NCBI GenBank assembly: GCA_964035545.1
Contig: OZ037767.1
Span: 16,734,581-16,798,580 of the forward strand
Source: Bugula neritina
Taxonomy: Eukaryota; Animalia; Bryozoa
Direction of reading: 5' to 3'
Length of the DNA: 64,000 nt
A program made the translations under genes and the position numbers. Positions 2,156 to 59,670 of this stretch are shown here, piece by piece. Every line of letters begins with the position of its first letter. The stretch's first letter is position 1. The notes below the pieces were generated by a model. The model worked only from the letters and a program-made list of their open reading frames with translations. It was not told the origin of the DNA and ran no database searches.

Positions 2156-5100
2156 TTATCCAGTAGTAACCAACTGACTGGGAGAATCTCCAGAACTTGT
2201 AGCCTTGGTTCTCCTATCAATTACAGAAGTGTATGTAGTTTGTAGTCTGAGATCAGAACCTAACTGTTCATTAACATTACGGGACGGTGTGCTTGCCCCT
2301 CTCACTGGCTGAATTAAAGCTGACACTTTTTCATGAAGAATACTAGACTCGCCAGTTTTAAGAACTTCAGCTAAATCATAGAATCGGTGGTTATATTCCG
2401 TGAGTTTCCTTTTCAGATCTTCAAGACTACGTGACTGTTCTTCGATAAGATCTCCCTGAGCAAGAAATTGAGGAGACAACTTTGAGCAGGCAAGATAACT
2501 CCAAAAAGAAAGAATGAATTTTAAAAAAATGCAGCAGAGGAAAAGTTTGTGGCAATAGGATGGAAACGAATATTTCAGAATATTTAGAGGTTAGAGAAAA
2601 CTGAATTGAAAATTAGAATCTCACCTGTTTAGTTATGATACGTTCACACTCAGTTACTCTGTCACTCAGAGCATCAGTATGACTGTCAGTACGACTGCGA
2701 GAGTGACTGTCAGTTACAGAGTTACTAGTAGAAGGTGTAGAATGGTCAAATAAAACAAACTTTCTTCTGGAACATTCCACTGCGGGAGACGTTTTCCTTC
2801 TCTTCAGAGCAGATCCAAAGAGTGGAGACATGCTTATTCTTTTTCTAGCTAAAAGGAGTGTATACAGAGGGGTAATTTAGCTAGCTGAAAGGAGTGTATA
2901 CAGAGGGGTAATTATCTAGCTGACATGGAACAAAGGAGTGTATACAGTGAGTGGGACAATTTATCCCTAACTCAGTTTAATATCCATAGCAACAGAGAGA
3001 ACACTGCAGTGGAGTGCAGCAGTAAATTGACAAGTTCTATTGATCAGATATAAGCTCAATGTATTGTCCAGCTCATGATTTCCAGAATTATCTGCTTGTG
3101 TAAGGTTCAAACCTTTATATGTAATACTCACAGAGTCCTGCTTTTAAATAAGAGCGGACACAGTCACATAACCAACAGTCACACACAATGTACAGTACCT
3201 CCACACATAGACTACACACAATGTACAGTACCTCCACACATAGACTACACACAATGTACAGTAGTTACCTCCACACATAGACTACACACAATGTACAGTA
3301 CCTCCACACATAGACTACACACAATGTACAGTAGATACCTCCACACATAGACTACACACAATGTACAGTACCTCCACACATAGACTACACACAAGGTACA
3401 GTAGTTACCTCCACACATAGACTACACACAAGGTACAGTAGTTACCTCCACACATAGACTACACACAAGGTACAGTAGTTACCTCCACACATAGACTACA
3501 CACAAGGTACAGTAGTTACCTCCACACATAGACTACACACAATGTACAGTAGTTACCTCCACACATAGACTACACACAATGTACAGTACCTCCACACATA
3601 GACTACACACAATGTACAGTAGTTACCTCCACACATAGACTACACACAATGTACAGTAGATACCTCCACACATAGACTACACACAATGTACAGTACCTCC
3701 ACACATAGACTACACACAATGTACAGTACCTCCACACATAGACTACACACAATGTACAGTACCTCCACACATAGACTACACACAATGTACAGTACCTCCA
3801 CACATAGACTACACACAATGTACAGTACCTCCACACATAGACTACACACAATGTACAGTAGTTACCTCCACATATAGACTACACACAATGTACAGTAGAT
3901 ACCTACACACATAGACTACACACAATGTACAGTACCTCCACACATAGACTACACACAATGTACAGTAGTTACCTCCACACATAGACTACACACAATGTAC
4001 AGTACCTCCACACATAGACTACACACAATGTACAGTAGTTACCTCCACACATAGACTACACACAATGTACAGTACCTCCACACATAGACTACACACAATG
4101 TACAGTAGATACCTCCACACAGACTACACACAATGTACAGTAGTTACCTCCACACATAGACTACACACAATGTACAGTAGTTACCTCCACACATAGACTG
4201 AGAGCTTAGTTCAGGTTCGGGAATGTCTACAGTCACTCCACCTGGTAGTACAGCCACCCGGTCTTTCAGCAGCTCCTGGTTAGACACGTATTACTATATT
4301 ACTACTATATTATATTATTATGATACTAAAAAAATATATTATACTGTTATATTATATTATGCTATATTGTTGTATTACACTATATTACACTATACTACAC
4401 TATACTATTATATTATATTAATATATTGTTGTATAATACTATATTACTATAGTATTATAATATATTGCCACGTCATTGTGCAATATTAATATATTAATGC
4501 CATATTATTATATTGCTATATAATGAGACAATTTAATATATAATAAAAAACAAATATTATAACATTCAATTCAATCTCACCAGTTTAAGTGTTGGCAATA
4601 TTTTCTCTTCAAAGTGCTCCATAGCCATTGAAGAAATGTCCCTCAGTTCCATGAGCACCTCGTGAGAGCGGGGTGGCTCTTTTATAGTCCGTACCATCCT
4701 CAATACTCTCATTAGTTCATCTAGAACCTGTAAACATACACAATAGGCATAGAGTTTATTATAAAATATACAGACACGCCATGTACTATCTCATTATATT
4801 ATTATTACACTAAAACGCACATTCTGTTGATTAGACATACCAAAACACATATTCTGTTGAATAGACACACCAAAACACATGTGCTGTTGAATAGACGCAC
4901 CAAAACACATGTGCTGTTGAATAGACGCACCAAAACACATGTGCTGTTGAATAGACGCACCAAAACACATGTGCTGTTGAATAGACGCACCAAAACACAT
5001 ATTATGTTGAATAGACACACCAAAACACATATTATGTTGAATAGATACACCAAAACACATATTATGTTGAATAGACACACCAAAACACGTATTCTGACTT

Positions 5101-5549
5101 ACTTTGCCAGGTATGAAGCAGCAGTAGCCAGTCTCGATGTACTTGGCGTACGTAATCTGCAGAAGTGACATCCGGGTTTCTATGGCCGACAGGATGTCCG
5201 CGTGTCTGCAGTACGCATGATCCCGTCTCTCCGACTCGCGACGGGGCAACTTCTTCTTAATCTCTCTCTGAACAACCGTGTAAAAGTTCTCGGCTTGAGT
5301 GAAACCATAGTTTAAGGAAGCCATGCTTAGCTCATTCAACGATTTGGAAACCTGGAAAAAGTTGATAAGAATTCTGTAGAGCTGTAAAAAGCAACTTTGA
5401 CTACTACAGAAAATAGTTCAACTGTTGGCATTTCAATTACTCACCCTTCTCAGTGCGGATACTTCCTCAAAGGACAAGAAAGAGATAACCTTTAGTTTGA
5501 GTTCTTGAGGCAAGTCTAAAAAGCTGAAGGTCGTCTGCTGCTCGCCCAT
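2156..5549 (-). CDS. FBXO28: F-box only protein 28; exons 5549-5445, 5351-5103, 4727-4581, 4275-4185, 2848-2625, 2455-2156
   Basis: F-box FLDLPQELKLKVISFLSFEEVSALRR; LPRRESERRDH, CCFIPGKVLDE and ELRDISSMAMEHFEEKI motifs; all introns GT-AG with consistent phases. Confidence 0.93.
2845..2948 (-). repeat. 2-3 tandem copies of the FBXO28 intron-4 acceptor region
   Basis: Sense ctctgtatacactccttt(t/c)ag|ctag repeated at ~36-bp spacing. Confidence 0.8.
3180..4198 (-). repeat. 33/37-bp minisatellite (~29 copies) spanning the FBXO28 exon 4 donor
   Basis: Sense unit TCTATGTGTGGAG|GTAACTACTGTACATTGTGTGTAG; the first copy is the true exon end. Confidence 0.95.
4810..5096 (-). repeat. 30-bp minisatellite starting just after the FBXO28 intron-2 donor
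   Basis: caaaacacatgtgctgttgaatagacgcac x~9. Confidence 0.95.
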
Positions 5550-7183: not shown

Positions 7184-10100
7184 ATGCACGAGGGAAATCC
7201 AAATGGGTCAAGTTCAAGCTGTGAAAATCAAAATGGAGACTCAGAAAATGAAATTTCTTCCAAAGGAGACTCTAGCTTAGTAAGGTCAAAATGTGTAAAG
7301 ATGGGTGCCTTTCCTCTGACACACAAAGACAAGGACATAATAAGACTGATTGGACAGTATTTAAAAAACACTGGCTTTGAGTAAGTTTGAAAAATATTAT
7401 GCCTTTTGCCTATGTCTTGCACAATAATAGTAAAATGATTTCAGCTGTGTTTTTATAGAATTTAGAGTTTTCTTCAGGCTTATGTGCTCACAATTTTTTT
7501 AATAGTCGAGTTTTTGGTTGATTTCTATTTATTAATTATTGATGAAATATTCTTCTTATCAGTTATTAATATATGTGTAAGTATAACTCAACTAATGACT
7601 TCATTTGTGAGAGTTACTACTTTGCCTAGTTTAAAGTTGTTGATGAAGTAGGACACTGCAGTTACTGATGTTTAATTGCAGGCAAACAGCGGATAAGCTG
7701 GTGGATGAATCTGGTTTGTATCTCGAGCACCCAGTAGCAACTCAACTCAGATCTCATATTTTGGCTGGCAACTGGACCAAGGTAGTTTTACTTATATAAA
7801 CAACATTAACTGCTCTTACCCTTTAAAGTCTATTACTTACTGATGTAAACTTACATATTCTTTGGTGTTTAGGCTGAGGCTAGTTTGGCAGAACTACACA
7901 AACTCCTTTCATCTGATGAGTCAATGATGAAGGTACGTGTTGGTACTATGATTTGTTACTAAATCGCTGAGTGTTTCTGACACTTACGTTGAAGTGAGAC
8001 TCACACTGATATTTTGGGCTGAGAAACTCTTTGCACTCATGTCAAGTGAGAAGTCATTTACGCAGGTAGAACTCACAGTGATACTGAGTGATAAGGTAGC
8101 AACTCATAGTGATACTGAGTGATAAGGTAGCAACTCATAGTGATACTGAGTGATAAGTTAGCAACTCATAGTGATACTGAGTGATAAGTTAGCAACTCAT
8201 AGTGGTACTGAGTGGTGATCTTGAATTAAAAGTGATGCTGATATTTTAAAGTTCTTACTTTTGATTGGAAATTATTTAACTTTTTGTAGGAGATGAAATT
8301 TAGTGTACTAAAACAGAAGTATTTAGAGATGGTAGAAGACGGTAGATTAATAGAGGCGATACATTGTCTCAGATATGAACTGACCCCTCTCAAGTTCAAC
8401 ACCGGCCAAGTACACAAACTCAGCACGTGAGTATTTATATTCATTGCATACTCGTTATTGCAAGACTCGGCTAGTTTTAAATTATTATTGTGTTCCTTAT
8501 GTAATTTATTAAACCATATTGAAAAGCATTACTCTTCTAAGTTTTCTCAGCTTGAGATTTAGTCATAGTACTGAGTCAGTTTTCTTTGTTAGATACGTAA
8601 TGTATGACAGCTTAGATGAGTTGAAAGAGATGGCAAACTGGGCTGGCAAAGGCTATGCATCACGGCAGAGTTTAATGGAGCATTTACAGAGTAAGTCTTT
8701 TCTACCAACTCATTCACTCTGCTAACTCATTCACTCTACTAACTCATTCACTATACTAACTCATTTACTCTACTAACTCATTCACTCTACTCACTCATTC
8801 ACTCTACTAACTCATTCACTCTTCTAACTTATTCACTCTACTAACTCATTCACTCTACTAACTCATTCACTCTACCAACTCATTCACTCTACTCACTCAT
8901 TTACTCTACTAACTTATTCACTCTACTAATTCATTTACTCTACTAACTCATTCACTCTACTAACTCATTCACTCTCTCATTCATTCACTCTACTAACTCA
9001 TTCACTCTACTCACTCATTCACTCTACTCACTCATTCACTCTACTAACTCATTCACTCTACTAACTCATTCACTCTACTCACTCATTCACTCTACTAACT
9101 CATTCACTCTACCAACTCATTCACCCTACTAACCAATTCACTTTACTAACTCATTCATTCTACTAACTCTTTCACTTTAATAACTATCTAATACTCACTT
9201 ATTATCTTTTGTAGCGTTTTTGCCGATTCACATTGTGTTGCCCCCAAAGCGTCTGGACAAGTTGCTAGACCAAGCTGTGAGTCATCAGATCCACCAATGT
9301 AAATACCACAACAGATCTCTCTCTCCTCATTTATACGATGACTTTTCTCTCCTCACTGATCACATCTGTGCTAAGTAAGTAGTCTATGTGCTAAGTAAGT
9401 AGAGTCCTTGTTAAGTAAGTAACACCTGCAATATACTTACTTGTATTAACTTGTGTGATGTAAATCCATAGTGAAGTCGTGCACGCGAGTATTTTCTTTA
9501 AAGACTGATTAACTCTGTCTAAACAGCAGATGAATAGCAGATGAACTGATCAACAAATTATGTAGTAATACAGCAAACTGACCTAACTGACAAGTTTAGT
9601 ATTTTAACCATTAGACAGTTACTTGTTATGAACAGTGCTATGAATTCTTTGAGGTGACTGTATACTGTACAATGTTATAATGACACGTGACTTCTGCCTT
9701 TAGAGACAGCTTCCCTTCCCGCTGCACACATATATTAACTCAACATGGCGACCAGGTCTGGTTCTGCAGATTCTCTCCAGACGGGTCTCTCCTAGCAACA
9801 GGTAAACAAGTTTCACTTCTATCTTAGCAACAGGTAAACAAGTTTCACTTCTATCTTAGCAACAGGTAAACAAGTTTCGCTGCATCCTCACAGTCTCCTA
9901 GCAATATGTAAACAAGTTTAGCAAACAAAGGATTTGAATGTTTGCTATATGATGATTTTTAGTTACATAGGAGAGGAAAAACAACTCCTAAAACAAAGAA
10001 ATGGATTTGCTCATGTGTGATGTAACTATTTCATTAATTTTTGCTATTATCACTGATATGTTGTTATATTATGATTATTATACGTAAAGTTGTTGGCCCT

Positions 10101-13087
10101 CTAAGACATGACAGTATTACACTGTTTGTCCGACAGGTTCTAAGGACGGGATGATATACGTCTGGTCTATAGATCAGCACACCTATGAGTTCAGTATAAA
10201 GTACAGTCTAGAGGGACACACGTACGGCGTGGCCCACCTAGCCTGGTCTCCTGACAGCAAGCACATCGTAGCCTGTGGTCCAGACGAGTGTGGGGATGTC
10301 TGGATATGGGACATAGAGGTGTGGGCTCCTCAAAACTATCTTCCCATGTTTTAAAGATCTTGTTAGCTAGGGTGTTAGCCGAGTGCTGTTACAAACTACT
10401 TACCCTGATTGCACGTTACATGTTACTCGCCTTCACTGTAAGTACAATTGTACTTACACCGATTGTAAGTCACATACTGTACGTCTGTTTAATAATCTAG
10501 ACGGGAGAATTGAAGGTCCGAATGAGTCATTCAACAGACGACAGTCTGACTAGCGTTTCCTTCCACAAAGATGCACGGAGATTTGTTACGGGAGGAACTA
10601 GAGGTCAATTTTATCACTGTGTAAGTATCGGTGTAGAATGTGTAAGTATAGACATACAGCGTGTAAGTATAGACATACAGTGTGTAAGTATAGACATACA
10701 CTGTGTAAGTATAGACATACACTGTGTAAGTATAGACATACACTGTGTAAATATAGACATGCAGTGTGTAAGTATAGACATACACTGTGTAAATATAGAC
10801 ATACAGTGTGTAAGTATAGACATACACTGTGTAAGTATCGGTGTAGAATGTGTAAGTATAGACATACAGCGTGTAAGTATAGACATACAGTGTGTAAGTA
10901 TAGACATACACTGTGTAAGTATAGACATACACTGTGTAAGTATAGACATACACTGTGTAAATATAGACATGCAGTGTGTAAGTATAGACATACACTGTGT
11001 AAGTATAGACATACACTGTGTAAATATAGACATGCAGTGTGTAAGTATAGACATACACTGTGTAAGTATGCTGTCTCCTACTGCATAATTTTGATGAAAA
11101 TGGGGGTTTCACTTCATTTACTCTCTCATGTACAACCATAACGAAAGTGGACAACTCCTAAATCATTTCATATTCGGTTTTATTTGAAATTTCTAAAAAC
11201 TTTTGCTGCGTTTATGATTGATTTCCTTTTTGTGTTATTAGTATATATTAAATATTTATTATCTTATTGAGTTATTTTAGAACAGTTTTGAGGATGTAAT
11301 AATGAGAAATTATCTGCTCATGCCCATGTTGACAGGATCTGGAAGGTAACGTGTTGGACTCATGGGAAGGGATCAGAGTTCACTGCGTCGGCTGCCTCAA
11401 TGATAACAAAACAGTCCTGGCTGCTGACTCTCACTTTAGACTTCGTTCTTACAACTTTGAGGATCTGAGTGACCAGCACTTGTGAGTACTACTCGGTACA
11501 GTCACTAGTACTACTCAGTACTGTCACTAGTACTACTCGGTACTGTCACTAGTGCTACTCAGTACTGTCACTAGTGCTACTCGGTACTGTCACTAGTGCT
11601 ACTCGGTACTGTCACTAGTACTACTCAGTACTGTCACTAGTACTACTCGGTACTGTCACTAGTGCTACTCAGTACTGTCACTAGTACTACTCAGTACTGT
11701 CACTAGTGCTACTCAGTGCTATCACTAGTACTACTACTACTACTAGTACTACTACTACTATTACTACTGCTACTACTACTGCTACTACTACTAATACTAC
11801 TACTACTACTACTAATACTACTACTACTATTACTACTGCTACTACTACTACTAATACTACTACTACTAGTAATACTACTAGTACGACTATTACTAATGAT
11901 CCTGACTATACTAATAAATATGTTGAGTACAACCTCTACTACGTAGTATTAATTATTATATCATATTCTGCCAGCACTCTTATCTCGACTGTGCTATTGT
12001 AGATTACAGGAAAGTCACTCTATTGTCTCGTTTACCATCAGTGAAGATGGCCGGCTGGTGTTACTCAACATTGACTCAGAGGTTGGTCTATGTTTCTGTA
12101 TTACGTAATTTCTAGCATGACCTAGCAGAATGTTCTCGTGAGATAACTCTGAAATTACACTAATCGTTTCATGATTCTTCAGTATTTATTGTTGAATCGT
12201 CTAAAGATGATGAGATGAAGTTTATATGATCTGTGCAGGCATATCATTTCAACAAATATTTTACTATTAAATTTCAGACTATCTTTTTGCCTAAACTATA
12301 AAAAGATGAAATTTTTCGATATTATATTTAATACATAATCTAATAATATAGCATGAATAACTTGATTTCCAGGGACATTTAGGAAAGAATGCATAAACAA
12401 TTTCAGTCATCACTTGTCATGTGTATGTATCATAGTTCAAGACACACGTTCTAATTATAGCACATTACATAAGATAGCGCTGTCTCTTTCAAGGGTATCC
12501 ACATCTGGGATCTGGAGAACAACTGCATGGTACGAAAGCTGCACGGCCTGAAGCAAGGATACTATGCAATACACTCTAGTTTTGGAGGTGTGAATCAGGA
12601 CTTTGTAGCTAGCGGCAGCGAAGGTCAGTTAAAATTCACTTATTAAGTTGTTATCAGCAACAGTTTATAGAGTCGCTCTTGATAATATTGTTTCAACTGT
12701 ACACTGTGTAATATACTGTGTAGCATATTGTGTTACAGATAACAAGGTGTACATATGGCACATTGAGAAAGAGAGCCCCATTTGTGCTCTGGAAGGACAC
12801 ACTCAGACAGTCAATTGTGTTCACTGGAACCCGGCTAATCCGTCAATGATAGCTAGTGTTTCCGACGACTCTACAATCAGAATATGGGGGCCTGCCATGC
12901 CCGCCACCGATAGTCCATCTACCAGTCGGTCACCGTATACCTCAAGATTACCACAAGGTAGATAGATTGTGTTTGAGGATTTAATATCCAGTACTTATGT
13001 TAGTTACTATTCGTCTAGTTCATGTCGCATGTGTTCACAGGTGGTGACTCATTTGCCAACCTCTCAGGGAGATGTACGCCAGTTTGA
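7184..13087 (+). CDS. WDR26: WD repeat protein 26 (CTLH/GID complex); exons 7184-7380, 7682-7781, 7873-7932, 8290-8426, 8593-8690, 9215-9374, 9704-9801, 10137-10318, 10501-10620, 11336-11481, 12003-12081, 12494-12623, 12739-12957, 13041-13087
   Basis: Lis[17 protein letters not shown]; CTLH LEHP..ILAGNW; [10 protein letters not shown]; WD40 repeats ([42 protein letters not shown]); phases consistent; last exon less certain. Confidence 0.93.
8070..8215 (+). repeat. 31-bp tandem repeat, WDR26 intron 3
   Basis: aactcatagtgatactgagtgataaggtagc x~5. Confidence 0.9.
8701..9178 (+). repeat. 17-bp minisatellite (~28 copies) containing TACTAAC, WDR26 intron 5
   Basis: ctactaactcattcact unit. Confidence 0.95.
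9367..9420 (+). repeat. Triplicated WDR26 exon 6 donor
   Basis: tgtgctaa|gtaagtag, tgtgctaa|gtaagtag, tgttaa|gtaagt. Confidence 0.9.
9793..9878 (+). repeat. 32-bp GT...AG unit triplicating the WDR26 exon 7 donor
   Basis: tagcaacag|gtaaacaagtttcacttctatct x2.7, plus a degenerate copy at ~9895-9920. Confidence 0.92.
10615..11069 (+). repeat. 21-bp minisatellite spanning the WDR26 exon 9 donor, with a 210-bp higher-order duplication
   Basis: cactgt|gtaagtatagacata; GT every 21 bp from 10621 to 11062; variant unit gtaagtatcggtgtagaatgt recurs at 10621 and 10831. Confidence 0.95.
11485..11900 (+). repeat. 22-bp repeat grading into (ACT)n, WDR26 intron 10
   Basis: agtactactcagtactgtcact from intron position +4, then actactact. 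Confidence 0.9.
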
Positions 13088-14033: not shown

Positions 14034-17000
14034 CTACTGCCCCGCATTCTGATCGAAGTGGCGGATGCGTCTATATATGCCATGTCCTTCAACTGCGACA
14101 TTGCACCTCTCCTCTGTATCTGTCCATTCTCCCTCGTAGTCCTCCCTGCCTTCTGCCACGTATTGTCTCCTCCTGCAACAGAGAACATTACAGCACGACG
14201 TGGAGACAACTGACATGTAGAGAACAGCTTCATGAAGAGAGAGAGCACAATAGTCTGACCGAATAACTCAGAATATGAAATAAAATCCTAACAAATTCAA
14301 AAACTAAATGAAAATAAGATGAATGAAACAGAAAAACATGTATAGGGAGAGTGAAAAGCCAAGTACATACTTCTTGAGTGTAAGGTTGGCGAGAGAAAAG
14401 CCCTGAGTAAAAATACACACAGAGAACTGAGTCTAAGACCTGGTAACATGTTTCTAGTTGTTTACATGTAACAGCAGTGAGTGCCAGTCAGTGAGTGTAA
14501 CGGCAGCAGATAGGTGAGCCGCTGACGGCTACTTACCTGTCACCAGGTGACGTCTGCTTTAGAGTCTCCACACCTGTGAATACGACAGCCGATCCTCCGG
14601 TGGCCGTGGGCTTAACATCTCCCTACAGAGTAGAGTATACAGAGTAGAGTACACAGAGTATACAGAGTAGAGTATGCAGAGTAGAGTATACAGAGTAGAG
14701 TAGAGTATACAGAGTAGAGTATACAGAGTAGAGTATACAGAGTAGAGTATACAGAGTAGAGTATACAGAGTAGAGTATACAGAGTAGAGTATACATAGTA
14801 GAGTATACAGAGTAGAGTATACAGTGTAGAGTATACAGAGTAGAGTATACAGAGTAGAGTATACATAGTAGAGTATACATAGTAGAGTATACAGAGTAGA
14901 GTATACAGAGTATACAGTGTAGAGTATACAGAGTAGAGTATACAGAGTAGAGTATACAGAGTAGAGTACACAGAGTATACAGAGTAGAGTACAGAGTATC
15001 CAGGTAAAGTACCTTGACTAATTTAGTCTGCAGGTTGCCCTGTGCGTCAGAGTCCTGCGTAGTCAGTATGTAACGACTAGCTTTGTTTGTGTCCTTCACC
15101 TCCAACTTGCCCACTGACTTCTTGTGTTTCATCTTTGGCTGCAGGACTGTTTCCAGAGGAGCTATAGCCTCAGGCCTGTGGTCTAACCACTTCTCTCCTA
15201 CAGACTTGGATCTCCGGTGATTACGGATGGGTGTCTACACACAGCAATCTTCAGGTTACACATGCTAAGTACAAGGACGTTTACTCACACTAGTCACATG
15301 ACACTAGTCACATGACACCAGTCACATGACATCTCACTAGTCACATGACATCTCACTAGTCACATAACATCTCACTAGTCACATGACATCTCACTAGTCA
15401 CATGACACTAGTCACATGACATCTCACTAGTCACATGACATCTCACTAGTCACATGACATCTCACTAGTCACATGACATCTACTCACAGGACGATGACCT
15501 CCAGCTGAGGGAGACGAAGCTCGCTGTCTCTGAGGCAGCATATTCTTCACTGTAGACCTGGTAGTTGGTCTGCTCGCCCTCTCTGGAGCCCCCTTGGACC
15601 GGCTGGAGGCGGTGGGGGTGGCGTAGCTGGGGGTGGCAGTGGTAGACCTGGCACCTCCTCGCTGAAAGTCAAACGCAGCAAGTCATGGTAATATGTATGT
15701 AGAGAGTGGATATAGCAATATACCCGGGGGGAGGGAAGGAGTGGATATAGGTACATACCAGGGAGAGGGAAGGAGTGGATATAGGTACATACCGGGGGAA
15801 GAGAAGGGGTGGAGCGAGCCAGTTCTCCCGACAGTGACTCGATGTCGCTCTGGTTCACAATGTTCTTGAGGAGGCGGAGTTTCCTGTCCTTGACGGTGAG
15901 GTTTTCCTGAGCTTCCTGTTGGATCCGCTGCTTTTCCTGCTCCAGTTGATGTTCATACTCCACCTCTGCCTGCTCCACCTGCACCACAACAACACAGTGC
16001 ATAGCGGTGACATCATATCATATAATAATGACAAAACCTGAACAGGAGAAAGCGGGGATAGGTGAGAATATAATAAGGACACAACGCAGACCTGCTTCTC
16101 ATACTGAGCACGTAGTTTTTCTCTCTCGTAGTCCGTCTTGTGCAGCGCCATGTTCTTGTTGTGCAGTTTGTCGCCGAGATGGCGGTTGTCTTGCTCCAAG
16201 TGAGACAGTTTCTGTCTGAGTGTCCTCAGCTCCTTCTTCAGCTTGTCAGACTCCCTCTCTCTCTCGGCTATCACCGTGTCTCTGTCGGCTATCACAGTGT
16301 CTCTCTCCGACACGGCGCCACACAGCCTCGTGTTCTCCTCACGCAACGTCTGCAGCTCTTCTTCAACATTCACCAGCAGCTCCCGGAATGACGCCTCTGT
16401 TGGTAATATATTATACTCTGATATAATATACTATAATATACTGTAATATGATGTACTGTAATATAATATATTGTAATATAATACACTGTAATATAATACA
16501 CTGTAATATAATATACCGTAATATAATATACTATAATATAATTTACTGTGATATAATATTAATACTTATAGATATTAGACTATGTACTGTAAAAAGCAGA
16601 TTAATGGATATTAGATTATATAGACATTAGAATATACAGACATTAGGATAAATAGACATTAGATTATATAGACATTAGAATATATAGACATTAGATTATA
16701 TAGACATTAGGATATATAGACATTTGAATATATAGACATTAGATCATATAGATGCTAGACATATAGATGCTAGACTTATAGATGTTAGATTGAAAGGTGA
16801 CATACGCTTTCTCTGAACCACCTCCAGCTCCTTGCGTTTCATTTCATGGATATTGTCTAAATAGTTGGAAAGGGCCACCAGATCAGCATCTGATTCGTCC
16901 ATTGGGTCCATCTGTGAGGGTATATCACAGTGTATTACTACGCAGTGTATTATTACGCAGTGTATTACTATGCAGTGTATCACTACGCAGTGTATCACTA

Positions 17001-20000
17001 CGCAGTGTATTACTACGCAGTGTATCACTACGCAGTGCATCACTACGCAGTGTATCACTATACAGTGTATTACTACGCAGTGTATTACTACGCAGTGTAT
17101 CACTACACAGCGTATCACTACACAGCGTATCACTACGCAGTGTATTAGTACACAGTGTATCACTATACAGTGTATTATTACGCAGTGTATTATTACGCAG
17201 TGTATTACTATGCAGTGTAATACTATGCAGTGTATCACTACGCAGTGTATTACTACGCAGTGTATTACTACGCAGTGTATCACTACGCAGTGTATCATTA
17301 CGCAGTGTATCACTACACATGAATACAATAGTACACCACATAACAGACACAGTCATATTAAGGTTCACATACCGGGAGCTCAGGAAAAGGAGGTAGACTG
17401 TAAATCTCGGAAAGAGGGACGGGGGCGGGCGGCATACGCCCCAAACTGTTCATCTTCTTAGACGGAGGTTGAGACTCGTGGGCGGACACGGCAGCTGGAC
17501 GTCTGCGACTCCTGTGAGTCAGCTGCTGCTCGGCAAACTTTGGTTTATCTTGAGCTCGGTGAACCTGCACTTCCTGTGCGGCCTCGGAGAACCGCATGAC
17601 GTGCTGCAGCAGACGTACAGACAGACGTACAGCTGTGTTGTATCATATAGATATGTTAAACATGAATAAACGAGAAACATGTCCTTTATTTACCTCTTTG
17701 TTTATCCGTAATACTGATTTACTTTGATAAAGTAGTAAACAAAAAAATGTTTCTCGTTTATTTTTTAATTACACGATAAGGATATATTCAATAGATGCAT
17801 TATATTATATTTAGTAATATATCCGTTACATTATATTATATAGATAGTAATATGCATGTTATATTATATTAGATGGAGGTAGTAATATATCCTATTATAT
17901 TATATGAATATGAATACACTCACCACTGTCTCGTCATACTCGGCTGCCTTAGGATTGACACACACAATCATCCTTACTTTCCCTTCTCCATCAAAGTAGT
18001 TCTTGAACAGATGAGTGATCTTCGAGTCTCTGTACGGCACCATCTAAATCACATGACATACCGAGGTGTAAACTACATCACATGACACACCGAGGTGTAA
18101 CTACATCACGTGACCCCTGACCTTGTTATTGGAGCTCTTCTGGTTCTCTCTGAGAATGTCTATGCACTGTCTCAGCACCATGAGACTCTGGTTAATCTGT
18201 CCCGCCTCCTTCAGCCTCTCTCCGGAGCTCTTGGTGCGGTTAGTCCTCTCACTTCCTGCCAGATCGACCAATGAGAGCTGGCTGACAACTACCTTGCTTT
18301 TGTCCTACAGTATGCAGTATACAGTACGTGTAACTTACAGTATACAGTACAGTGTACAGTATACAGTACGTATAACTTACAGTATAAAGTACGTGTAACT
18401 TACAGTATAAAGTACGTGTAACTTACAGTATACAGTACGTGTAACTTACAGTATACAATACGTGTAACTTACAGTATACAGTACGTGTAACTTACAGTAT
18501 ACAGTGCGTGTAACTTACAGTATACAGTATGCAGTACGTGTAACTTACAGTATACAGTACGTGTAACTTACAGTATACAGTACGTGTAACTTACAGTATA
18601 CTCCACTACTTAGAGTAGAGCTGATAGACCGCCATGCAAGACTTACCATCATCAGGTTGTTACCAGACGGATCTAAAGGGGCCTGTACCAGTCTAATGTT
18701 GAACACACTGTGACTCCGACTAGACTCTGCGTTCAGCACTGTGTGGGCTACTTTCCTTCTCTTCTGACCTAGACACAGAGTTACTCTAGCTAGTATGACT
18801 GACAGTAGCAGTTACTCTAGTTAGTATGACTGACAGTAGCAGTTACTCTAGTTAGTATGACTGGCAGTAGCAGTTACTCTAGTTAGTATGACTGGCAGTA
18901 GCAGTTATTCTAGCTAGTATGACTGACAGTAGCAGTTACTCTAGTTAGTATGACTGACAGTAGCAGTTACTCTAGTTAGTATGACTGGCAGTAGCAGTTA
19001 CTCTAGTTAGTATGACTGGCAGTAGCAGTTATTCTAGCTAGTATGACTGACACAAATCGTAACTGTTAGCGCTAAACAACAAACTAATACCACTAGTCAC
19101 TATAATGATAAGTACACAAAGCAGTGAAATCTGTTGGTATTTGAAATGAGCTACTAGAGTTACAATAATGCATTTCATTCTATTATTTTATAATAAATAA
19201 TTCCTACCTTAGGTTATGTTGTTACATTACATCATCTTGTAACATAATGTAATATTATGTTAGGTAACTTTTATCCTATTATATAATATATCATTATATT
19301 ATATTATAATATATTGTTACTATACTATATGTATGCTAGTTTAAGTCACTGTACTGTATTATATTATATTATATTACAACATGTATCAGATCATATTATA
19401 CTACTTGATATTTTAACTATTTTAACTATATTACCTTACACTATATTATATTACAATATATAATATTATATCACATGTAGTACACTAACCTCTCACGAGA
19501 ATATCAAAGGCCTCTTCAGTAGATTTCACTTCCACCTCCGAGACGTTATGTACAAACATCACCCTCGACAAGTCCTCTCTGTATAACGTAGCGGAATATG
19601 TTACATGAGCAGCCGATAGGATGCTACCTTAGTATTATACAGCCAATAGGAAACTACCTTAGTATAGTATAGCCAATAGGAAGCTACCTTAGTATTTTAC
19701 AGCCAATAGGATGCTACCTTAGTATAGTACAGCCAATAAGATGCTACCTTAGTATAGTACAGCCAATAGGAAACTACCTTAGTACTGTACAGCCAATAGG
19801 ATGCTACCTTAGTATAGTACAGCCAATAGGAAACTACCTTAGTATTATACAGCCAATAGGAAACTACCTTAGTATAGTACAGCCAATAGGAAACTACCTT
19901 AGTGTAGTACAGCCAATAGGAAACTACCTTAGTATTTTGCTCTGTGGAGGTTTACTGCCAGTTATGGGGTCGTAGGGTAGCTCCTCTAGCAGGTCGTAGA

Positions 20001-22841: not shown

Positions 22842-22874
<33 letters not shown>

Positions 22875-38891: not shown

Positions 38892-39365
38892 CAAGGTTGG
38901 GGTCAATTACATATGAATGAAACTAGTTACAATTACATGAGAATTTGTCAATTACAATTACAGTTGATATAAATGTATTACAACTACAATTACTTTTGTT
39001 GTCACAGGAGACAAATGAAAGTTATATAATCTCACTTCTGGGGTCCAACTACCCCAGCAATTTTGACAACGGAAAACCATCCTTGTTCTCAACAGTAACA
39101 AATAGGGTGATAAATATGACATAAACTAATCTGGACTTTTTATTAAACAGTAGACAAGGCAGGAAAAATATGAATTTTATAAGATTTAAAAATTTGAAGT
39201 AACTGTTATGTAATTATAAAGTAATTGTAAAATTCAATTACATTAACAATGTAATTAATTACAATTACATTTTTATACATCAATTGCAAATTACATTCAA
39301 TTACTTGAAAAAATGTAATTAATTACAACCAATTATAATTACAAATTACAATTACCCCAACCCTG
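38892..39365. mobile_element. Complete non-autonomous hAT-type DNA transposon (474 bp)
   Basis: TIRs CAAGGTTGGGGT / ACCCCAACCCTG; perfect 8-bp TSD ACTTACAG at 38884-38891 and 39366-39373; subterminal AATTAC repeats. Confidence 0.9.
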
Positions 39366-42858: not shown

Positions 42859-42905
<47 letters not shown>

Positions 42906-45322
42906 GCTACTACTACTACTACTACTACTACTACTGGTGCTACTACTGCTACTGCTATTACTGCTGCTGCTGCTGCTGCTACTACTGCTGCTGCTACTAC
43001 TGCTGCTGCTACTACTGCTACTACTGCTAGTACTGCTACTACTGCTAGTACTGCTACTACTGCTAGTACTACTACTACTGCTAGTACTACTACTGCTACT
43101 ACTGCTACTGCTACTACTACTGCTAGTACTACTACTACTACTAGTACTACTGCTGTATACTCTTTTATAAATACCTACTGCTTTTGTTAGGTGATGGTGA
43201 CAGTGAAAGATAAAACGTCAGGTGCAGACGCAATAAAAGAGATGATACGTGTGAAGGGGGCAGAGATCATTCGAGAGAGACTAGCAAACTACATAGACAC
43301 TCTAAAGATTGGTAAGTTTTTCTGTACTTTTTTACTACTCACTGCATGTATTACTACTCACTGTATGTATTACTACTCACTATACGTATTACTACTCACT
43401 GTACGTATTACTACTCACTGTACGTATTACTACTCACTGTATGTATTACTACTCACTGTACGTATTACTACTCACTGCGCGTATTACTACTCACTGTATG
43501 TATTACTACTCACTGTACGTATTACTACTCACTGTACGTATTACTACTCACTGTACGTATTACTACTCTAGTCTATAGATATATTTCACTTCTGCAGAGT
43601 TTAGTCAAGGAATGATTCTTCCCACCACCAAAGGTCAAACTCCACCTACCAAGCCGACGTCGGCATCAGCCAACCTTGCCAATGAGTTCAAACAAACCAG
43701 CATCAGCAGCAACAGCAGCAGTGCCCCGGCATCAAAACCGGTTAAAATAGAAACTAAGAAAATCAGTCTGAAGGAAGAGTTTATGTGCAGCAAAGAGGAG
43801 CTGTACAGAGCCTTGACCGAACAGAACGTAAGCTTCTCCACGATTCCGTCTATTCACTCAATTCTAAAATAGATAGGTGAAATTATTTCTCAGTTCTTTC
43901 TCTCTTGAGTTTACCCGGAGCTGGAACTCTGTGTTGTAGATGGTGCAGGCATTCACCAGGTCAGTGGCGAACCCATTTGAAGTGGAAGTTGGCGGCAAGT
44001 TTGTGTTATTCAATGGAATGATATCTGGCGAGTTCCAACAGTTGGTGAGTGACTTGTACCTACACAGTAATACTCTTACTACTGACTAGTACACAGTACT
44101 ACTCTTACTACTGACTAGTACACAGTACTACTCTTACTACTGACTAGTACACAGTACTACTCTTACTACTGACTAGTACACAGTACTACTCTTACTACTG
44201 ACTAGTATACAGTACTACTCTTACTACTGACTAGTACACAGTACTACTCTTACTACTGACTAGTACACAGTACTACTCTTACTACTGACTAGTACACAGT
44301 ACTACTCTTACTACTGACTAGTACACAGTACTACTCTTACTACTGACTAGTACACAGTACTACTCTTACTACTGACTAGTACACAGTACTACTCTTACTA
44401 CTAACTAGTACACAATACCACTCTTACTACTGACTAGTACACAGTACTACTCTTACTACTAACTAGTACACAATACTACTCTTACTACTGACTAGTACAC
44501 AGTACTACTCTTACTACTAACTAGTACACAGTACTACTCTTACTACTGACTAGTACACAGTACTACTCTTACTACTGACTAGTACACAGTACTACTCTTA
44601 CTACTGACTAGTACACAGTACTACTCTTACTACTAACTAGTACACAATACCACTCTTACTACTGACTAGTACACAGTACTACTCTTACTACTAACTAGTA
44701 CACAATACTACTCTTACTACTAACTAGTACACAGTACTATTCTTACTACTGACTAGTATACAGTACTACTCTTACTACTGACTAGTACACAGTACTACTC
44801 TTACTACTGACTAGTATACAATACTACTCTTACTACTAACTAGTACACAATACTACTCTTACTACTAACTAGTACACAATACTACTCTTACTACTGACTA
44901 GTATACAGTAATACTCTTACTACTAACTAGTATACAGTAATACTCTTACTACTAACTAGTATACAGTACTACTCTTACTACTAACTAGTACACAGTACTA
45001 CTCTTACTACTGACTAGTACACAGTACTACTCTTACTACTGACTACTACAGCTATTCCTGTAAGTCTTATGTTAATGAACTGATTGCTATTTCACAGGCA
45101 CCTCACGACACTCTAGTTCAAAGGTGGCGCATGAAACATTGGCCTGAAGGTCATTTCTCGATCGTCACCATAAAGTTAAGCCAATCATCAAACTGCACAA
45201 CTCTCTCTCTGTCTCAGACCGGAGTGCCATCGGCCGAGGCTGACAGGACGAAGGAGGGCTGGAAGAACTACTACTGGAATAGCATTAGACAAACATTCGG
45301 ATACGCTGTCAATATATTCTAG
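41359..45322 (+). CDS. AHSA1: Activator of HSP90 ATPase 1; exons 41359-41438, 41749-41939, 42723-42811, 43191-43311, 43598-43827, 43940-44044, 45098-45322
   Basis: MAKWGEGDPRWIVEERAD..NVNNWHWTEKNA; GEASASNRKGKLIFFYEW; IEIPNLSEE; EFSQGMILPT; WPEGHFS; GWKNYYW..IRQTFGY. Confidence 0.96.
42150..42702 (+). repeat. 21/16-bp repeat, AHSA1 intron 2
   Basis: tatagtatagtatggtagatg. Confidence 0.95.
42818..43155 (+). repeat. (CTA/CTG)n repeat, AHSA1 intron 3
   Basis: Trinucleotide run from just after the donor. Confidence 0.95.
43330..43570 (+). repeat. 19-bp repeat containing TACTCAC, AHSA1 intron 4
   Basis: tattactactcactgtacg x~12. Confidence 0.93.
44062..45050 (+). repeat. 29-bp minisatellite (~34 copies) containing TACTGAC/TACTAAC followed by AG, AHSA1 intron 6
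   Basis: tactactgactagtacacagtactactct. Confidence 0.95.
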
Positions 45323-48700: not shown

Positions 48701-51700
48701 TCATGTTTACAATAATCTTTCACATTAAAATCAAATCAGATGGACTAACCCCAGTGCTTTTCGTTCTTTTACTGCACGTCACATTCTTCCACTGAATTTC
48801 TCTGACTTCAAACAGGTTTTGGATTTCTTCACATTCTTGTTGAGTTGTGGTCCCTTGAACACAGGGTTTAGAAGTGAGACAACTCTTAATAATAAGCTAA
48901 CCATATGGATTAGCTGTACTATATTTTAAACACTTTTACAATTTTCTGTTTATAGCAAAATACTATAAAGTTACAAAATACTATAAAGGACCTTTGCCAA
49001 GAGAATAAGTTATAAAAAATATTCACTTTATCAATTATCACGTAATCAAGCGTCCTAAAATTGTTTAAAAAACGTATCCATGAAGTTAAATCAAGCAAAG
49101 AACTTTCACTCCAACTTTCAGCGTTATGAAATCATGTGACTGACTATGAAATCACGTGACTGATTTTTTAGTCATGTGACTGACCTGCGCCTCTTCCGGT
49201 AGCCTCACAGCAGCCCAACTCTGATTCTTTTGCACTATACAGTGCATCTCTGTAAAGGAACATGCAGAGAGTTTGTGTTAAGTATATAAAACATAATAGT
49301 AGGTAATCATATATGTATATTTGCTATATACTACATCTGTTTGAGGCACCTCCCAATAAACCGAGACATGCAACATAAGAAAATGTAAGGAAACATTCTA
49401 ATAAGATGAGAATACAGTATCATGACATGTACCTTAGTAGGAAATGTTTGTCATTTCTCAAACAAGGAGCGTATAAAGCACCCCCTTTGACTAGTTTCTC
49501 CCGCGAAGGCCCCGCCCACATGTTGGGTGGTACGAAGTGCTCTATTGTTCTCACTCCACTCCAAGTTACAATCTCCTCTGAATCAGAAGAAAACAAACTC
49601 AAAACGTACAACACTGACATTGCTACTGGGGCTCAACACGAGACCTCTGGCTTGCAAGCAGGTGTGTTAACCATTACACCACAGGGACTACTGAGTAAAG
49701 TCAACACTAAGCTACAGTATACCACACCACAGAGGATATAAACTAAGCTTGTAGACTAATCTCTGACTCACCTACTAGCAGTCTCTCTGACGCGAGTCGG
49801 GGAGGGACAACTCCAGATGAAGCGCAGAGCATAGCGATGGCTATAGCCTGTATAACTGTGATGGTGTGAATAAACCACGGGGTGTACACAGGTAGGGCCT
49901 CCAACTTCTGTCTTATATCAGCTCGGCTAAATCCTTTCTGTAGAATCTTTGGTCCTGAAAAATACGTACCACATTGTAAATCCTGAATGGCTTGTGTACA
50001 TACTGACAATTAGCCCTGTCCACCTACACACAGTGGTCAGGGTGGAGGGTCACAAGGATACGAACTTTCCTCATTCAATTACATCTCCTTGTGCATATTC
50101 CTTGTACTTACTATTTTTACATACTTTATATACAGAATCTATGTACAAGTTTACTTCATATACTTACTCTATGTACTTACTTCATGTACTTACTTCGTGT
50201 ACTTACTTCATGTACTTACTCTATGTACTTACTTTATGTACTTATTTCATGTACTTACTCTATGTACTTACTCTATGTACTTACTTTATGTACTTATTTC
50301 ATATACTTACTTCATGTACTTACTCTATGTACTTACTTCATGTACTTAATTCGTATACTTACTTCATGTACTTACTCCATGTACTTACTTCGTATACTTA
50401 CTTCATGTACTTACTCCATGTACTTACTTCATGTACTTACTTTACTCACCTGTATATACAGCATCAGTGAGATAATCTTTTATTCTCTGAAATCTTTCGT
50501 GTAGAGACTTCTTTGGCTCATACTGAGAGGAATAATATTCTAAAAGATAGCCTTAGTTTTAGTAATAGCTTTGGAGCCGCCAGACTATATAAATTATTAG
50601 TTATTAGAGTCCTATCTTATGCACCAAGGCTACCAAAAAATTATCTACATAAAAATATTTCATTGCAGATTGTACATTCAAAATACAAGTAAATTGAAGG
50701 TGCAGTGCAAATTTGGAAAAGCCTGTAATTTTTATGAAAAACACTACAAAAGAAGTTATAGTCTCGTGAAATTTTTCAATTTGAGCTTTAAACCAAAATT
50801 TATGAAGACAATTAAAAGCTTGGGCCATTGAAATTTTTCTTTTAACGTACCCCAGTGGTACTTTGCTAAAACAGTTTTTTCTATACAAGACGAATTCACT
50901 TGTACAGATAAAAAGCTGTGAATAATCAGACATGACATCTACAGACAGGAAATGACACCTTTTGCCTTATACAGCGCGTCATCAATACGGTCCCTCTTCT
51001 CTATCAGCCTCTGTCTGAGTAGAGAGATCTGAGGCTCTATTTCCTCTTTCTCTAGTCTATCCAACTGCCTCTTGTTAGATAGGTACAGCTGGTAGGCCTC
51101 CTTCCCGTACACAAAGTCACTCGGGTTGACAGTTTTAGGGAGTTTCACAGTCGGCAGGTAGAAGCTGGCATCTTGTCTACAAATAGAGAAAGGCTTGTGT
51201 ACGCTGAATTTTAAAAAATAGTTTTAGGAAAACATGTAAGCAGCTGAATAACAATAAGTAGGACTTCTAACTACAAAATCAACATTTAAGAAAACCTCAA
51301 TCAACATGGCGACACATTTCTATCAAGGCTATGAAATATTCTCAGGCAAATATATTACAATATATAAGTTTAGTTAACTATATTAAGTAACAACTTAATA
51401 TATAGAAACACAGATCGTCTTAATGTTCCAGTATCCTATCAGTAGAAGTTCTTGTGGTAATTGAGATAAAATAATGAAAATTTTACCCGATTTGCAAAAC
51501 TAAGAGGCAAAGTTTCACTTTCACCACTATACTTATATACTGAGCATATCTACTAATGGTTAAAACCTTTAGATACAAAACAAGGTGCTATATAATATAA
51601 CCTTAGATAATAGCATATATCCACTGCTACACTCTACCACATATATAATAGTTAGTACAACTTACCCTGTGTGGTGCTCATCTGTCTGCTTAGAACTTTT

Positions 51701-53967
51701 CTCTATATTCTCAGCTGATATACAAATACAAAGAATTTGATTACCACATAAACATATTATTATAGTATTAGTATTAGCAGATCTGGTTTGCTTTAGTGAA
51801 AGTGAATTAAAAGACTTCAGACAAGTTTTTACAAGCTTTTTGCCCTTTGAATCACAGCATATGCTATTATACGATACAGCTTTTCAATATGGCATCACAA
51901 TGTAGCATCATATCTACACAGAATCTGCAGTATGATACTATAGCTATATTATTATACTGTCTCTAAGAACTCTGCGTATTGATATAAAAACTTAAACTAC
52001 ATCTTATACTAAATATAATGTATTCCCTGTACTTACACACATAACATTCTACACAACGCACTACACAATGTACTACACAACGCACTACACAATGTACTAC
52101 ACAACGCACTACACAATGTACTACACAATGTACTACACAACGCACTACACAATGTACTACACAACGTACTACACAACATACTCCCATACACTGGTTCCGA
52201 ATACACAGGATTCTGCTGCCCTCTGCTCTGCACATTCAATTTAGCCTCTTCTTCAAAATTCAGCAGACGTGTGGCGGCCCCTCGCACATCCTTGACCTGC
52301 TTCCTCTGCAGCACTTTCTCTGTAACCAACTCCTTCGCATCCCATTTCTCTGCATCTGAATTCATCTGAAAGAAATTTCTATCAACTTTTGGAACTACTT
52401 TACAGATTAGCAGCTTTATTCAGTTTTAAAACATACAGCTTGAGGGAGAATATGGGCAAGAGGGAAAGTTGATTGCTCTAAGGTACACTAAATACTATAC
52501 AGTGTCTGTAGAGTATGCATGTGGACAGCACATTTAAAATAGACAAAACTTATTAATAGCTAAAATAAAATTTTTATATCTTCTTTCAAACATTATGATC
52601 ACTCTTAACGTGAAACTGTTGCAAAAAGAATAAATTTATGGCAGTAGTCACGATAACTGAACAATTTCTGGATAATTAATTTACTACACAGCAGCAGAAA
52701 GTCAGCAAATCTAACTGTATAATAAATATACTGGATTAAATCCAAATACATGCATGTCGGAGTTCTTAATCAGCTATATATTATTACATTATATTATATA
52801 TTACACTATTATATTATATTTTACTATATTATATATCATTATAATTATTATAATATATTTTATTATAATATGTCATATTTTATTATATCATATTATATAA
52901 TATCATATTATATTATATTATATTAATTAACTCAGCCTGAGGGTTAAGCTGACACAAACACTGCTCACCTGAGGGTCAGATCTGGAACTCTTAGCCGGTT
53001 TCCTGGAGCTGGTGGCAGCGGCGTTTGACATGTCGGTGAAAGTGATGTGTTCGTCATCTTTCTCCAGGAAGGGCGTGGCTAGAGTGAAGTAGAACAGATC
53101 GTCATCATGGTCAGAGTTGTCTTCTTCCTTCAGAAACATCTCCCTCCAAGTATTAGTACAATAGTATATCGCCATTGCATGCGCGAGAGTAGTATATATG
53201 GTATAGCAAGAGCTGTATACTGTATCATACTCTAGTACACTATAATATTATGTGCTATAGCATACCCTAGTATGGTATAATTATATATGCTATAGCATAT
53301 AAGAGTATACTATAATAGTATGTGCTATAGCATATAAGAGTATACTATAATAGTGTACGCTATAGCTTATTCTAGTATACTATTATAATACATGCTATAG
53401 CATATCCCGGTATACTGTAATAGTATACTTACTCTACATCACTGTGTAGACTGAGGAACTTACTCTACATCACTGTGTAGACTGAGATACTCTACATCAC
53501 TGTGTAGACTGAGTACTTACTCTACATCACTGTGTAGACTGAGGTACTTACTCTACATCACTGTGTAGACTGAGATCATCCACCGCACTATTCTTTCTAC
53601 CAAACAACTTCCTGTTGCTCCTCATTGCCTGCAGTCTGTTGGATGAGGTGACATTTGACCTTGACATTCTCGGCGAGGTCGACAAAGCCAGCGCCTGTAA
53701 CTGCACCAACGTAAATACTATACAGTTACACTCTACTGAGTTATACTATACAGTTATACTTTTGACTATATACAGTGATACTATTCACTATAATATACAG
53801 TTGTACTATTGACTATATACAGTGATACTATTCACTATAATATACAGTTACACTATTGACTATATACAGTTGTACTATAGTCTACCGGTTTTGAAACTCC
53901 TTGCAAATCCTTTTCAGTTAATCTTCTTGCTGCTTCGGACAGCTCATTGTATAAAAGGGAAGGCTCC
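45766..53967 (-). CDS. Inactive rhomboid (iRhom/RHBDF-like) pseudoprotease, about 15 exons; 5' end uncertain (possible ATG at 54420)
   Basis: Long cytosolic N-terminus; IRQKLEALPVYTPWFIHTITVIQ first TM; Cys-rich iRhom homology domain (CCLGGRGQC..HCSQARC); QFWRIPLSLIYHEGIIH; IEKVAGW; LGSGGAISGL; LGLLPGVNQFTNMAGALFG. Confidence 0.8.
47923..48122 (+). mobile_element. tRNA-derived SINE in an iRhom intron
   Basis: Pol III A box tggtctagagg and B box ggttccaaccc at tRNA spacing, followed by non-tRNA body ggccattggtgatgttaggaagagcatcc. Confidence 0.6.
50150..50449 (-). repeat. 13-bp repeat reiterating A|GTAAGT directly after an iRhom donor
   Basis: Sense ACAG|gtgagtaaagtaagtacatgaagtaagtacatggagtaagt... 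x~23. Confidence 0.93.
52045..52181 (-). repeat. 12-bp repeat starting at an iRhom donor
   Basis: Sense GGGA|gtatgttgtgta gtacgttgtgta gtgcgttgtgta... Confidence 0.9.
53427..53574 (-). repeat. Five copies of an iRhom exon end plus donor (27-31 bp)
   Basis: Sense ctcagtctacacagtgatgtaga|gtaagt. Confidence 0.92.
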
Positions 53968-55487: not shown

Positions 55488-55547
<60 letters not shown>

Positions 55548-58500: not shown

Positions 58501-59670
58501 CAGTGCAAGTATTGACGAGCCGAAGCATCTGCTGCACCTCCCTGACGAAAGCTGCAGCTTGTTCTCCGTTAGTAAAGTCAGGTTTGGTTACTATCTCCAT
58601 GAGTCCTATACCTAGACAAACAGACATGTTAAGCATTACACATCGCAGGTAATGCATCTCACTCACTCACTCACTAACTTACTCACTCACTCGCTCGCTC
58701 ACTCACTCACTCACTCACTCACTCACTCACTCACTCACTCACTCACTATCTCGCTCACTCACTCACTCACTAACTTACTCACTCACTCGCTCGCTCACTC
58801 ACTCACTCACTCACTCACTCACTCACTCACTCACTCACTCACTATCTCACTCCCTCACTCACTTACTCACTCCCTCACTCACTCACTCGCTCACTCGCTC
58901 ACTCGCTCACTCGCTCACTCGCTCACCCACTCACTCACTCACTCGCTCACTCATTTACTCACTCACTCACTCACTCACTCACTCACTCACTCACTCACTC
59001 ACTCACTCAACTTACCAGCGCGATTGAGATCCACTAAACTCCTGTTGTTCACAGCATCATGTAGACTTTTGCCACTGTCTTGTTCCAGTTGAATCTGATG
59101 GAGACGAGCCTTGTGAAAGAGAGCTTTTTTGTGCCTACAAGAGAAGCCAAATTTAGAAAATGTCTATCCAGCCCTTTTCATCCAAACTATAATGCACAAT
59201 TGAGATAATAGAATGTATAACAAGAAAACCAACCTGCCTCTAACATATATAATATAGTCAATTTCTCCGCCCACTGCTATCGGTTTCCTGTATTGTGTAA
59301 TCTGGTATCCTGCAGGCATATCAGCATAGAAATAGTGTTTCCTGTCAAATGTTGACACTCTATTGACATGGCAACCAAATGCAAGTGCTGTTTTCACCGC
59401 AGCCTTGACGCAGTATTTATTGAGAACCTAATGAATATAATACACACATATTTAGGTTAGCATTACAGTAAATTGATAATTTCAGTTAATCAAACCAGCA
59501 TTGTAATGAATACTCACTGGCAATGTTCCAGGTAACGCAGCATCAAAATATGAGACGCAGGAGTTGGGAGAACTGCCATATTCTGTAGAGGCTCCAGAAA
59601 ACAGTTTTGACTTTGAGTTTATTTGAGCATGAATTTCTAGACCAATCACAGCTGCCAAATTTTTTCTCAT
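55134..59670 (-). CDS. GATB: Mitochondrial glutamyl-tRNA amidotransferase subunit B, about 11 exons seen; true start (transit peptide exon) not located
   Basis: [18 protein letters not shown]; [10 protein letters not shown]; [19 protein letters not shown]; [11 protein letters not shown]; DLNRAG; LMEIVTKPD; [11 protein letters not shown]; RTEVKNLNS; [20 protein letters not shown]. Confidence 0.93.
55333..55598. repeat. (CTA/CCA)n repeat, GATB last intron
   Basis: Trinucleotide run next to the donor. Confidence 0.95.
57305..57550 (-). repeat. 13-bp repeat starting at a GATB donor
   Basis: gtgacagctagga / gtgacagctataa. Confidence 0.93.
58658..59008 (-). repeat. (GAGT)n filling a GATB intron, giving overlapping GTGAGT hexamers
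   Basis: Sense GCTG|gtaagttgagtgagtgagtgag... Confidence 0.95.

Follow-up and report, generated by a model that had tools for sequence, protein, structure and literature searches.

Intronic minisatellites of the bryozoan Bugula neritina copy donor junctions about as often as chance predicts and acceptor junctions far less often

Minisatellites that cross exon-intron boundaries, called "mirages," have been described in amphioxus Adh3, the globins BflGb6 and BflGb9, TnC, and PGBD5, where they leave splicing undisturbed (PMC3087553, PMC3902484). In intron 7 of human F7, a 37-bp variable-number tandem repeat (VNTR) offers five to nine identical donors, and only the most upstream one is used, even when downstream copies are in frame (Borensztajn et al. 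2006, PMC1557585). Minisatellite-filled introns are also known from the mouse pseudoautosomal region (bioRxiv 10.1101/2022.03.26.485930), and VNTRs are enriched in human subtelomeres (PMC7608644). Here, we analyzed the tandem arrays found in introns of a 64,000-nucleotide (nt) stretch of the Bugula neritina genome (contig OZ037767.1, positions 16,734,581-16,798,580, from an assembly of 216 Mb), referred to below as the window. These arrays are a genome-wide case of the known mirage or F7-type minisatellites and not a new system.

The curated set comprises 12 gene models with 83 GT-AG introns in the window, with the reading-frame phase checked for each exon and the models searched against Pfam one exon at a time. 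Exons of the WD40, Vasohibin, Aha1_N, Rhomboid, GatB_N, and SF3b10 families were backed by Pfam matches, and the KIF23-like gene was matched by the kinesin family; the names FBXO28, WDR26, KIF23, and BDP1 denote what we take these genes to be, by our own recognition. Arrays are present in 44 of the 83 introns and occupy 42% of the intronic sequence, 2% of the exonic sequence, and 13% of the remainder of the window, in agreement with an earlier reading of the letters alone (the sequence-only reading), which had noted that coding exons largely lack them. Its view that each array arose locally was also borne out, as 32 of 33 window units had no near-copy in 262 kb and three units searched across the 216 Mb were each found only at their own locus. 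A dispersed repeat or transposon family was rejected, since units are not common to different loci. Arrays of WDR26 are present in short-read contigs of three samples, which argues against an assembly artifact. The arrays are real, intron private, and genome-wide. A literature search on bryozoan intronic repeats returned nothing relevant.

Outside the window, a small gene finder trained on it (leaving one gene out, 70 of 83 introns were exact and 10 were false) was run on 20 kinesin loci from six contigs, picked by gene family and not at random. It covered 68 of 69 kinesin hidden Markov model (HMM) hits and predicted 187 introns, 60 of them array bearing, giving a total sample of 270 introns and 99 arrays. 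Array cover ranged from 0 to 67% across the 20 loci.

Amphioxus mirages and the Bugula arrays have in common tandem duplications across the exon-intron boundary with normal splicing: 13 of the 99 arrays copy at least five exon bases together with the donor, and three boundaries were confirmed by RNA. Unit sizes overlap (10 to 72 bp in Adh3), and many units, although not all, keep the AG/GT in amphioxus and likewise here, at 3181 (12 strong of 29) and 53426 (GT in four of five). While amphioxus mirages concern a few genes, this bryozoan has hundreds of loci, and the donor-over-acceptor asymmetry was measured here, amphioxus being reported to have mirages at boundaries of both kinds. In WDR26 intron 9, as in F7 intron 7, the first unit spans the boundary and splicing takes the most upstream donor among identical ones, with decoys in frame; the F7 evidence comes from a single human locus and 50 constructs, whereas first-donor use here comes from RNA contigs of three introns only. 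With the minisatellites of high-recombination regions, the arrays share repeat-occupied introns, GC-richer exons, and enrichment toward chromosome ends. However, mouse pseudoautosomal repeats belong mostly to one family (mo-2), while in Bugula the unit differs from intron to intron and the shift in the GC fraction of third codon positions (GC3) is small (0.51 versus 0.47).

The central result is the unequal treatment of the two splice sites. Within the window, introns whose own donor junction had been copied numbered 7 to 8, against 0.1 to 0.6 for permuted junctions, and copies of the acceptor junction were found in one. In the main null, every array is collapsed to one unit and the chance that a randomly placed unit covers a splice site is calculated. 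Over the 270 introns, the donor GT was covered by 18 of 99 arrays (18.0 expected), while the acceptor AG was covered by 3 (18.0 expected; binomial p=0.0015), with donor-to-acceptor ratios of 10:2 in the window and 8:1 in the other loci. Likewise, 13 donor arrays copied at least five exon bases against 14 expected, and one acceptor array did so. Five further nulls gave an expected donor cover of 8.6 to 16.7; donor cover was at chance under four of them and the acceptor deficit was significant under all five. Arrays often reach close to the AG but rarely pass it, as shown by edge crossing (donor 15:34 versus acceptor 2:25; Fisher p=0.02). The chance level of donor inclusion is explained by the shortness of the nonrepeat part of array introns. 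Donors under arrays were not stronger than other donors.

A genome-wide search for triples of AG|GTRAGT words 8 to 36 nt apart gave 3,470 matches, compared to 583 for the one-base control AGCTRAGT and 106 for triples of the acceptor class TTTKYAG|G, although the latter is the commoner among the splice sites of our own sample (18 versus 10 of 270). With about 7 matches per locus among the matches listed, the donor triples extrapolate to roughly 490 loci. The donor/acceptor ratio of this search overstates selection, because arrays avoid T-runs and the acceptor pattern includes one; the edge test is free of this problem. Arrays of the window that cover a splice site outside WDR26 include the following.

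2845..2921, - strand: 36-nt unit x2.2 over a proposed acceptor at 2848/2849 (predicted exon); one of only 3 acceptor-covering arrays.
3181..4199, - strand: FBXO28-like intron 4, 33/37-nt unit x29, the first unit combining 15 exon bases with the donor at 4184.
15704..15813, - strand: KIF23 intron 16, 34-nt unit x3.2, with 21 exon bases and the donor at 15792.
19610..19935, - strand: KIF23 intron 8, 30-nt unit x10.9, with 8 exon bases and the donor at 19927; stop after the first copy.
23342..23902, - strand: KIF23 intron 1, 16-nt array within a 274-nt duplication copying the exon 1 end and donor (copy at 23616).
28045..28115, + strand: Vasohibin gene intron 2, 36-nt duplication, two copies of exon end and donor (28062, 28098).
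53426..53575, - strand: 31-nt unit x5, with 24 exon bases and the donor at 53551.

All eight arrays previously cited as copying an exon end plus GT are present, and more were found, among them the 274-nt duplication of KIF23 exon 1 at 23342..23902, which was absent from the earlier list. The claim of up to "~29 near-identical decoys" is overstated: at 3181..4199, 11 of 28 downstream copies are identical to the real donor (GAG|gtaacta, the first of these decoys shifting the frame), and the donors of this array divide into 12 strong, 13 weak (GAG|gtactgt), and 4 intermediate (gtatcta). The array at 9367 has three copies and that at 28045 has two. At 53426..53575, GT is kept in four of five units, giving three GT decoys, each leading to a stop where checked. 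Of the two acceptor arrays proposed, the one at 2845 does cover its proposed acceptor, while 31405 is not a Tandem Repeats Finder (TRF) array.

Use of the copied donors was followed in the stretch 7600-11484 with RNA contigs (run X7) and DNA contigs of the same sample (run X4), which diverge from the window by ~4-5% in exons and ~10% in introns. Runs X2, X4, and X7 belong to a genotype further removed from the window, which may be that of a sibling species. In run X1, two haplotypes were seen over this stretch, with depths of ~50 and 80, one of them matching the window. The WDR26 arrays concerned are the following.

8701..9185, + strand: intron 5, 17-nt unit x28.6, from +10 after the donor; 16 TACTAAC words.
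9367..9420, + strand: intron 6, three TAA|gtaagta copies; RNA joint 9374 to 9704, first copy.
9786..9878, + strand: intron 7, 32-nt unit x2.9, 16 exon bases, three CAG|gtaaaca; RNA joint 9801 to 10137, first copy.
10615..11069, + strand: intron 9, 21-nt unit x21.7, 6 exon bases; RNA joint 10620 to 11336, first copy.

The X7 contigs (depth ~470-495) showed GT-AG joints matching all eight curated introns. The first donor was spliced at 9374, 9801, and 10620, and no downstream joint was seen in these contigs, which drop rare forms. Strict commitment to one donor, as proposed in the sequence-only reading, therefore stands for three WDR26 introns. Intron 9 contains 17 open in-frame decoys, two of them outscoring the real donor, and its frame is open to 11086; since this frame runs open across the whole array, alternatives are unlikely to be missing on account of transcript decay, with the qualification that the RNA for the 10620 joint comes from the related genotype and the open frame was read in that of the window. 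The WDR26 arrays are also found in the X4 DNA contigs and, being common to X2 and X4, are older than the divergence from the window genotype. Contigs of X1, X2, and X4 contain skips of 149 to 322 nt within arrays, and no contig bridges a long array. Together with these skips, an X1 depth of 4,777 at 9380 (single-copy depth, ~50-140) is a hint of length variation and no measure of it.

The in-frame decoys of WDR26 intron 9, the GT kept in many decoys, and the introns that now rely on an array for their length could speak for signal-bearing units being retained because they serve a purpose, be it regulated choice of alternative donors, insertion of peptides, or recruitment of U1. We hold this to be very improbable, given the first-donor joints of the RNA contigs, the privacy of units to each intron, and the lack of frame bias (periods of donor arrays that are multiples of 3, 4/13 versus 24/79). 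Decoys also decay, with 13 of 29 weakened at 3181 and CT in place of GT in the 23342 unit. Intron birth was likewise considered. In the Rogers model, in the form in which it is cited in PMC3087553, introns are gained when an AG|GT proto-splice site is duplicated in tandem, and a duplication across an AG|GT-like junction is what the arrays share with it. They differ in that the copies sit inside introns whose 3' ends lie outside the copied junction: in WDR26, no intron was spliced between duplicated AG|GT copies, and every RNA joint links the first donor with an acceptor that lies beyond the array. Neither intron gain nor intron sliding was seen in any case.

Selection of the 3' splice site favors the first suitable AG past the branch point, so that a copy of the AG and exon start placed upstream would compete with the real acceptor. 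We consider it likely that the arrays arise by ordinary minisatellite birth in array-prone regions and are then filtered by splicing, with donor copies tolerated and acceptor copies removed. A piece of intron of 10 to 40 nt would be duplicated by slippage or repair in array-prone, probably high-recombination regions and expanded by unequal exchange. The resulting units, which are private to their locus, purine/pyrimidine alternating, and poor in A/T runs, would include an exon end with its GT at roughly the chance rate, as found against most of the nulls above. Donor arrays would be tolerated because the most upstream donor is used and the extra copies become intronic, as seen in the three introns, with the mechanism taken from the F7 work, whereas an AG plus exon-start copy may place a rival upstream of the real acceptor and be removed by selection, as the depletion suggests. 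The outcome would be a donor-biased set of mirage arrays without shown function.

Several observations weigh against this explanation. Units avoid T-runs, so that the acceptor deficit may be partly compositional. Under a length-weighted null built on array-free introns, donor cover was enriched 2-fold (18 versus 8.6, p=0.002). In the 270 introns, 49 arrays started at most 25 nt from the donor against 36 expected (p=0.0003), an excess that was found in the window (29 versus 18.6) and was not significant in the other loci (20 versus 17.4). Unique DNA has probably been lost from the ~15 introns that collapse most, inflating the null. The RNA evidence, finally, concerns three introns, all in one gene, and the contigs behind it lose rare isoforms.

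These ~15 introns shrink to 26 to 72 nt when their arrays are collapsed, shorter than any credible array-free intron (at least 78 to 83 nt), from which it appears that unique intron sequence has in some cases given way to the array. Introns consisting of little else than array (26 to 43 nt collapsed) were seen at 20845-21427 in the window and at L013:673-878, L014:7525-7744, and L007:4978-5902 in the other loci. The donor-proximal starts and the short collapsed introns both fit arrays that fill the space between fixed signals. They could also indicate that minisatellites are preferentially born at or just after 5' splice sites, by an exon-edge or co-transcriptional donor-recognition process, and then replace intron bodies, some introns needing their array for minimum length, which we regard as unlikely.

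A more specific proposal, to which we give similarly little credence, is exon-edge-biased duplication, in which homologous strand invasion between divergent alleles begins in the conserved exon and slips in the divergent intron, so that arrays form beside exon edges, acceptor copies being selected out afterwards. In introns with at least 200 nt of nonrepeat sequence, arrays gather toward both ends, the first fifth holding 20, the second 0, and the last 13, and 13 started at most 25 nt from the donor against 6.0 expected (p=0.003), although this excess was not significant in the independent loci alone (7 versus 4.0, p=0.09) and later insertion of unique DNA in mid-intron would also produce end clustering. 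One run does hold two haplotypes that often differ in introns, but small duplications were not in excess toward either end of array-free introns (9, 9, and 6 of 113).

The sequence-only reading had further claimed that splicing signals lie on the sense strand of the arrays whatever the orientation of the gene. In the 72 arrays touching no splice site, no such bias was found (sense versus antisense, GTRAG 4 versus 6, YTRAY 8 versus 14, and YAG 46 versus 53), and the array at 43332-43568 is a counterexample. Sense-strand GTRAG was enriched only in donor-covering arrays (8 versus 1), which follows from their origin. Reiteration of the branch point had been claimed too; CTRAC was not enriched at -45..-12 of array-free introns (11, versus 9 near the donor and 10 antisense). 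Units alternate purines and pyrimidines (0.64 versus 0.51), lack A/T runs, and favor ACAG, AGTA, CTAC, AGTG, GTGA, and ACTC, words that look like splice signals on both strands, which explains the earlier impression of signals. Further arrays of the window are listed below.

20851..21427, - strand: KIF23 intron 5, 22-nt unit x26, beginning at the GT and stopping 6 nt short of the AG; collapsed, ~30 nt.
23005..23218, - strand: KIF23 intron 2, 18-nt unit x11.9 from +2, derived from the donor's GTGAGT.
36196..36403, + strand: 11-nt unit x18.6, 20 nt past the donor at 36176, which the unit resembles (97th percentile).
43332..43568, + strand: AHSA1 intron 4, 19-nt unit x12.5; 12 donor-like GTGAGTA words on the antisense strand.
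44061..45050, + strand: AHSA1 intron 6, 29-nt unit x34 from +16; 34 CTRAC words, no splice site touched.
50103..50444, - strand: 5' part of the rhomboid-domain gene, 13-nt unit x22.5, GTAAGTA words just past a probable donor at 50449; intron outside the curated set.
58658..59009, - strand: GATB intron 3, (TGAG)n x88 microsatellite from +6 after a GTAAGT donor.

In the WDR26 intron 5 array (8701..9185), whose unit was found in other samples, donor-like words also occur on the antisense strand.

Duplication coupled to transcription or splicing at the 5' splice site, through pausing or R-loops, was the first inference drawn from the letters alone. The excess of donor-proximal starts in the window would agree with it, as would the 7 of 30 arrays starting at +3..+25 whose similarity to their own donor exceeds the 90th percentile (p=0.05). 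We nevertheless judge it quite improbable, as donor cover is at chance under four of the five nulls, nonjunction arrays have no sense bias, and array density varies with chromosome position and from 0 to 67% between loci, though all are spliced genes. With donor cover at the short-intron null, the acceptor strongly depleted, and no strand bias off the junctions, neither a process aimed at junctions nor the retention of signal-bearing units is upheld, and a system that multiplies splicing signals is largely contradicted by the lack of strand-specific enrichment beyond the expectation for short introns.

Array density decreased with distance to the contig end (rho -0.48, p=0.03), and two loci located 0.10 to 0.14 Mb from contig ends were 60% and 67% array. 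The GC3 of flanking exons was 0.51 for array introns and 0.47 for the others, a difference that exists between genes only; within genes, exon GC3 was not linked to arrays (p=0.24). Long arrays were also seen in mid-contig (C1:16.6 Mb and C3:16.7-17.6 Mb, on contigs of 32 to 36 Mb), about one small-chromosome length from the start, and might mark fused or joined chromosome ends. (TTAGGG)8 occurs nowhere in the assembly and is thus uninformative about an internal chromosome end near the window.

With 2 to 30 near-identical donors at 12- to 40-nt spacing, these several hundred natural loci would allow a genome-wide transcriptome sequencing (RNA-seq) test of the F7 rule that the most upstream donor wins, and the donor/acceptor asymmetry reads out, at population scale, which duplications of splice sites are tolerated. 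Inside such arrays, donors can be misplaced by gene predictors and read aligners.

Of 91 independent units, 5 contain the E-box-like word TCACATGA (15287, 18044, 29447, 33487, and L011:4273), against an expectation of 0.15; the word was seen by eye at 49125 too and is a possible shared core of unstable units. At 32175-32229 (+ strand), repeated ACAG|GT words in mid-intron, including ACAGGTAAGT, resemble a recursive splice site or tiny exon. A probable in-frame microexon of 18 nt, flanked by AG and GTAAG, is predicted in the KIF23-like gene at 22751-22768 (- strand). Two tandem paralogous genes, predicted to encode a hydrophobic segment and alike in their last exons, lie at 30756-33830 and 35085-37327 (+ strand).

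Intergenic, degenerate hexamer-periodic tracts (TATGAA, TACTAA, and TCATAA types) at 5800-6150, 25480-26300, 39945-40125, 40700-41110, and 60400-62300 lie mostly upstream of 5' ends and form a class distinct from the intronic arrays. Two similar (AATTAC)-rich copies (760-960 and 39180-39365) are probably a dispersed nonautonomous repeat, and an open frame at 24480-25070 (+ strand) that ends near a T/A-rich tract resembles, by eye, the C-terminal remnant of a non-long-terminal-repeat (non-LTR) retrotransposon reverse transcriptase. Intronless kinesin matches were found on small contigs of the assembly (C48, C58, C60, C108, C148, C165, C170-172, C182, C207, C208, C230, C233, C256, C272, C306, C309, and C318). 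They are interrupted almost solely by TAA/TAG, which points to a ciliate-type genetic code, so that these contigs are probably from a contaminant or epibiont.

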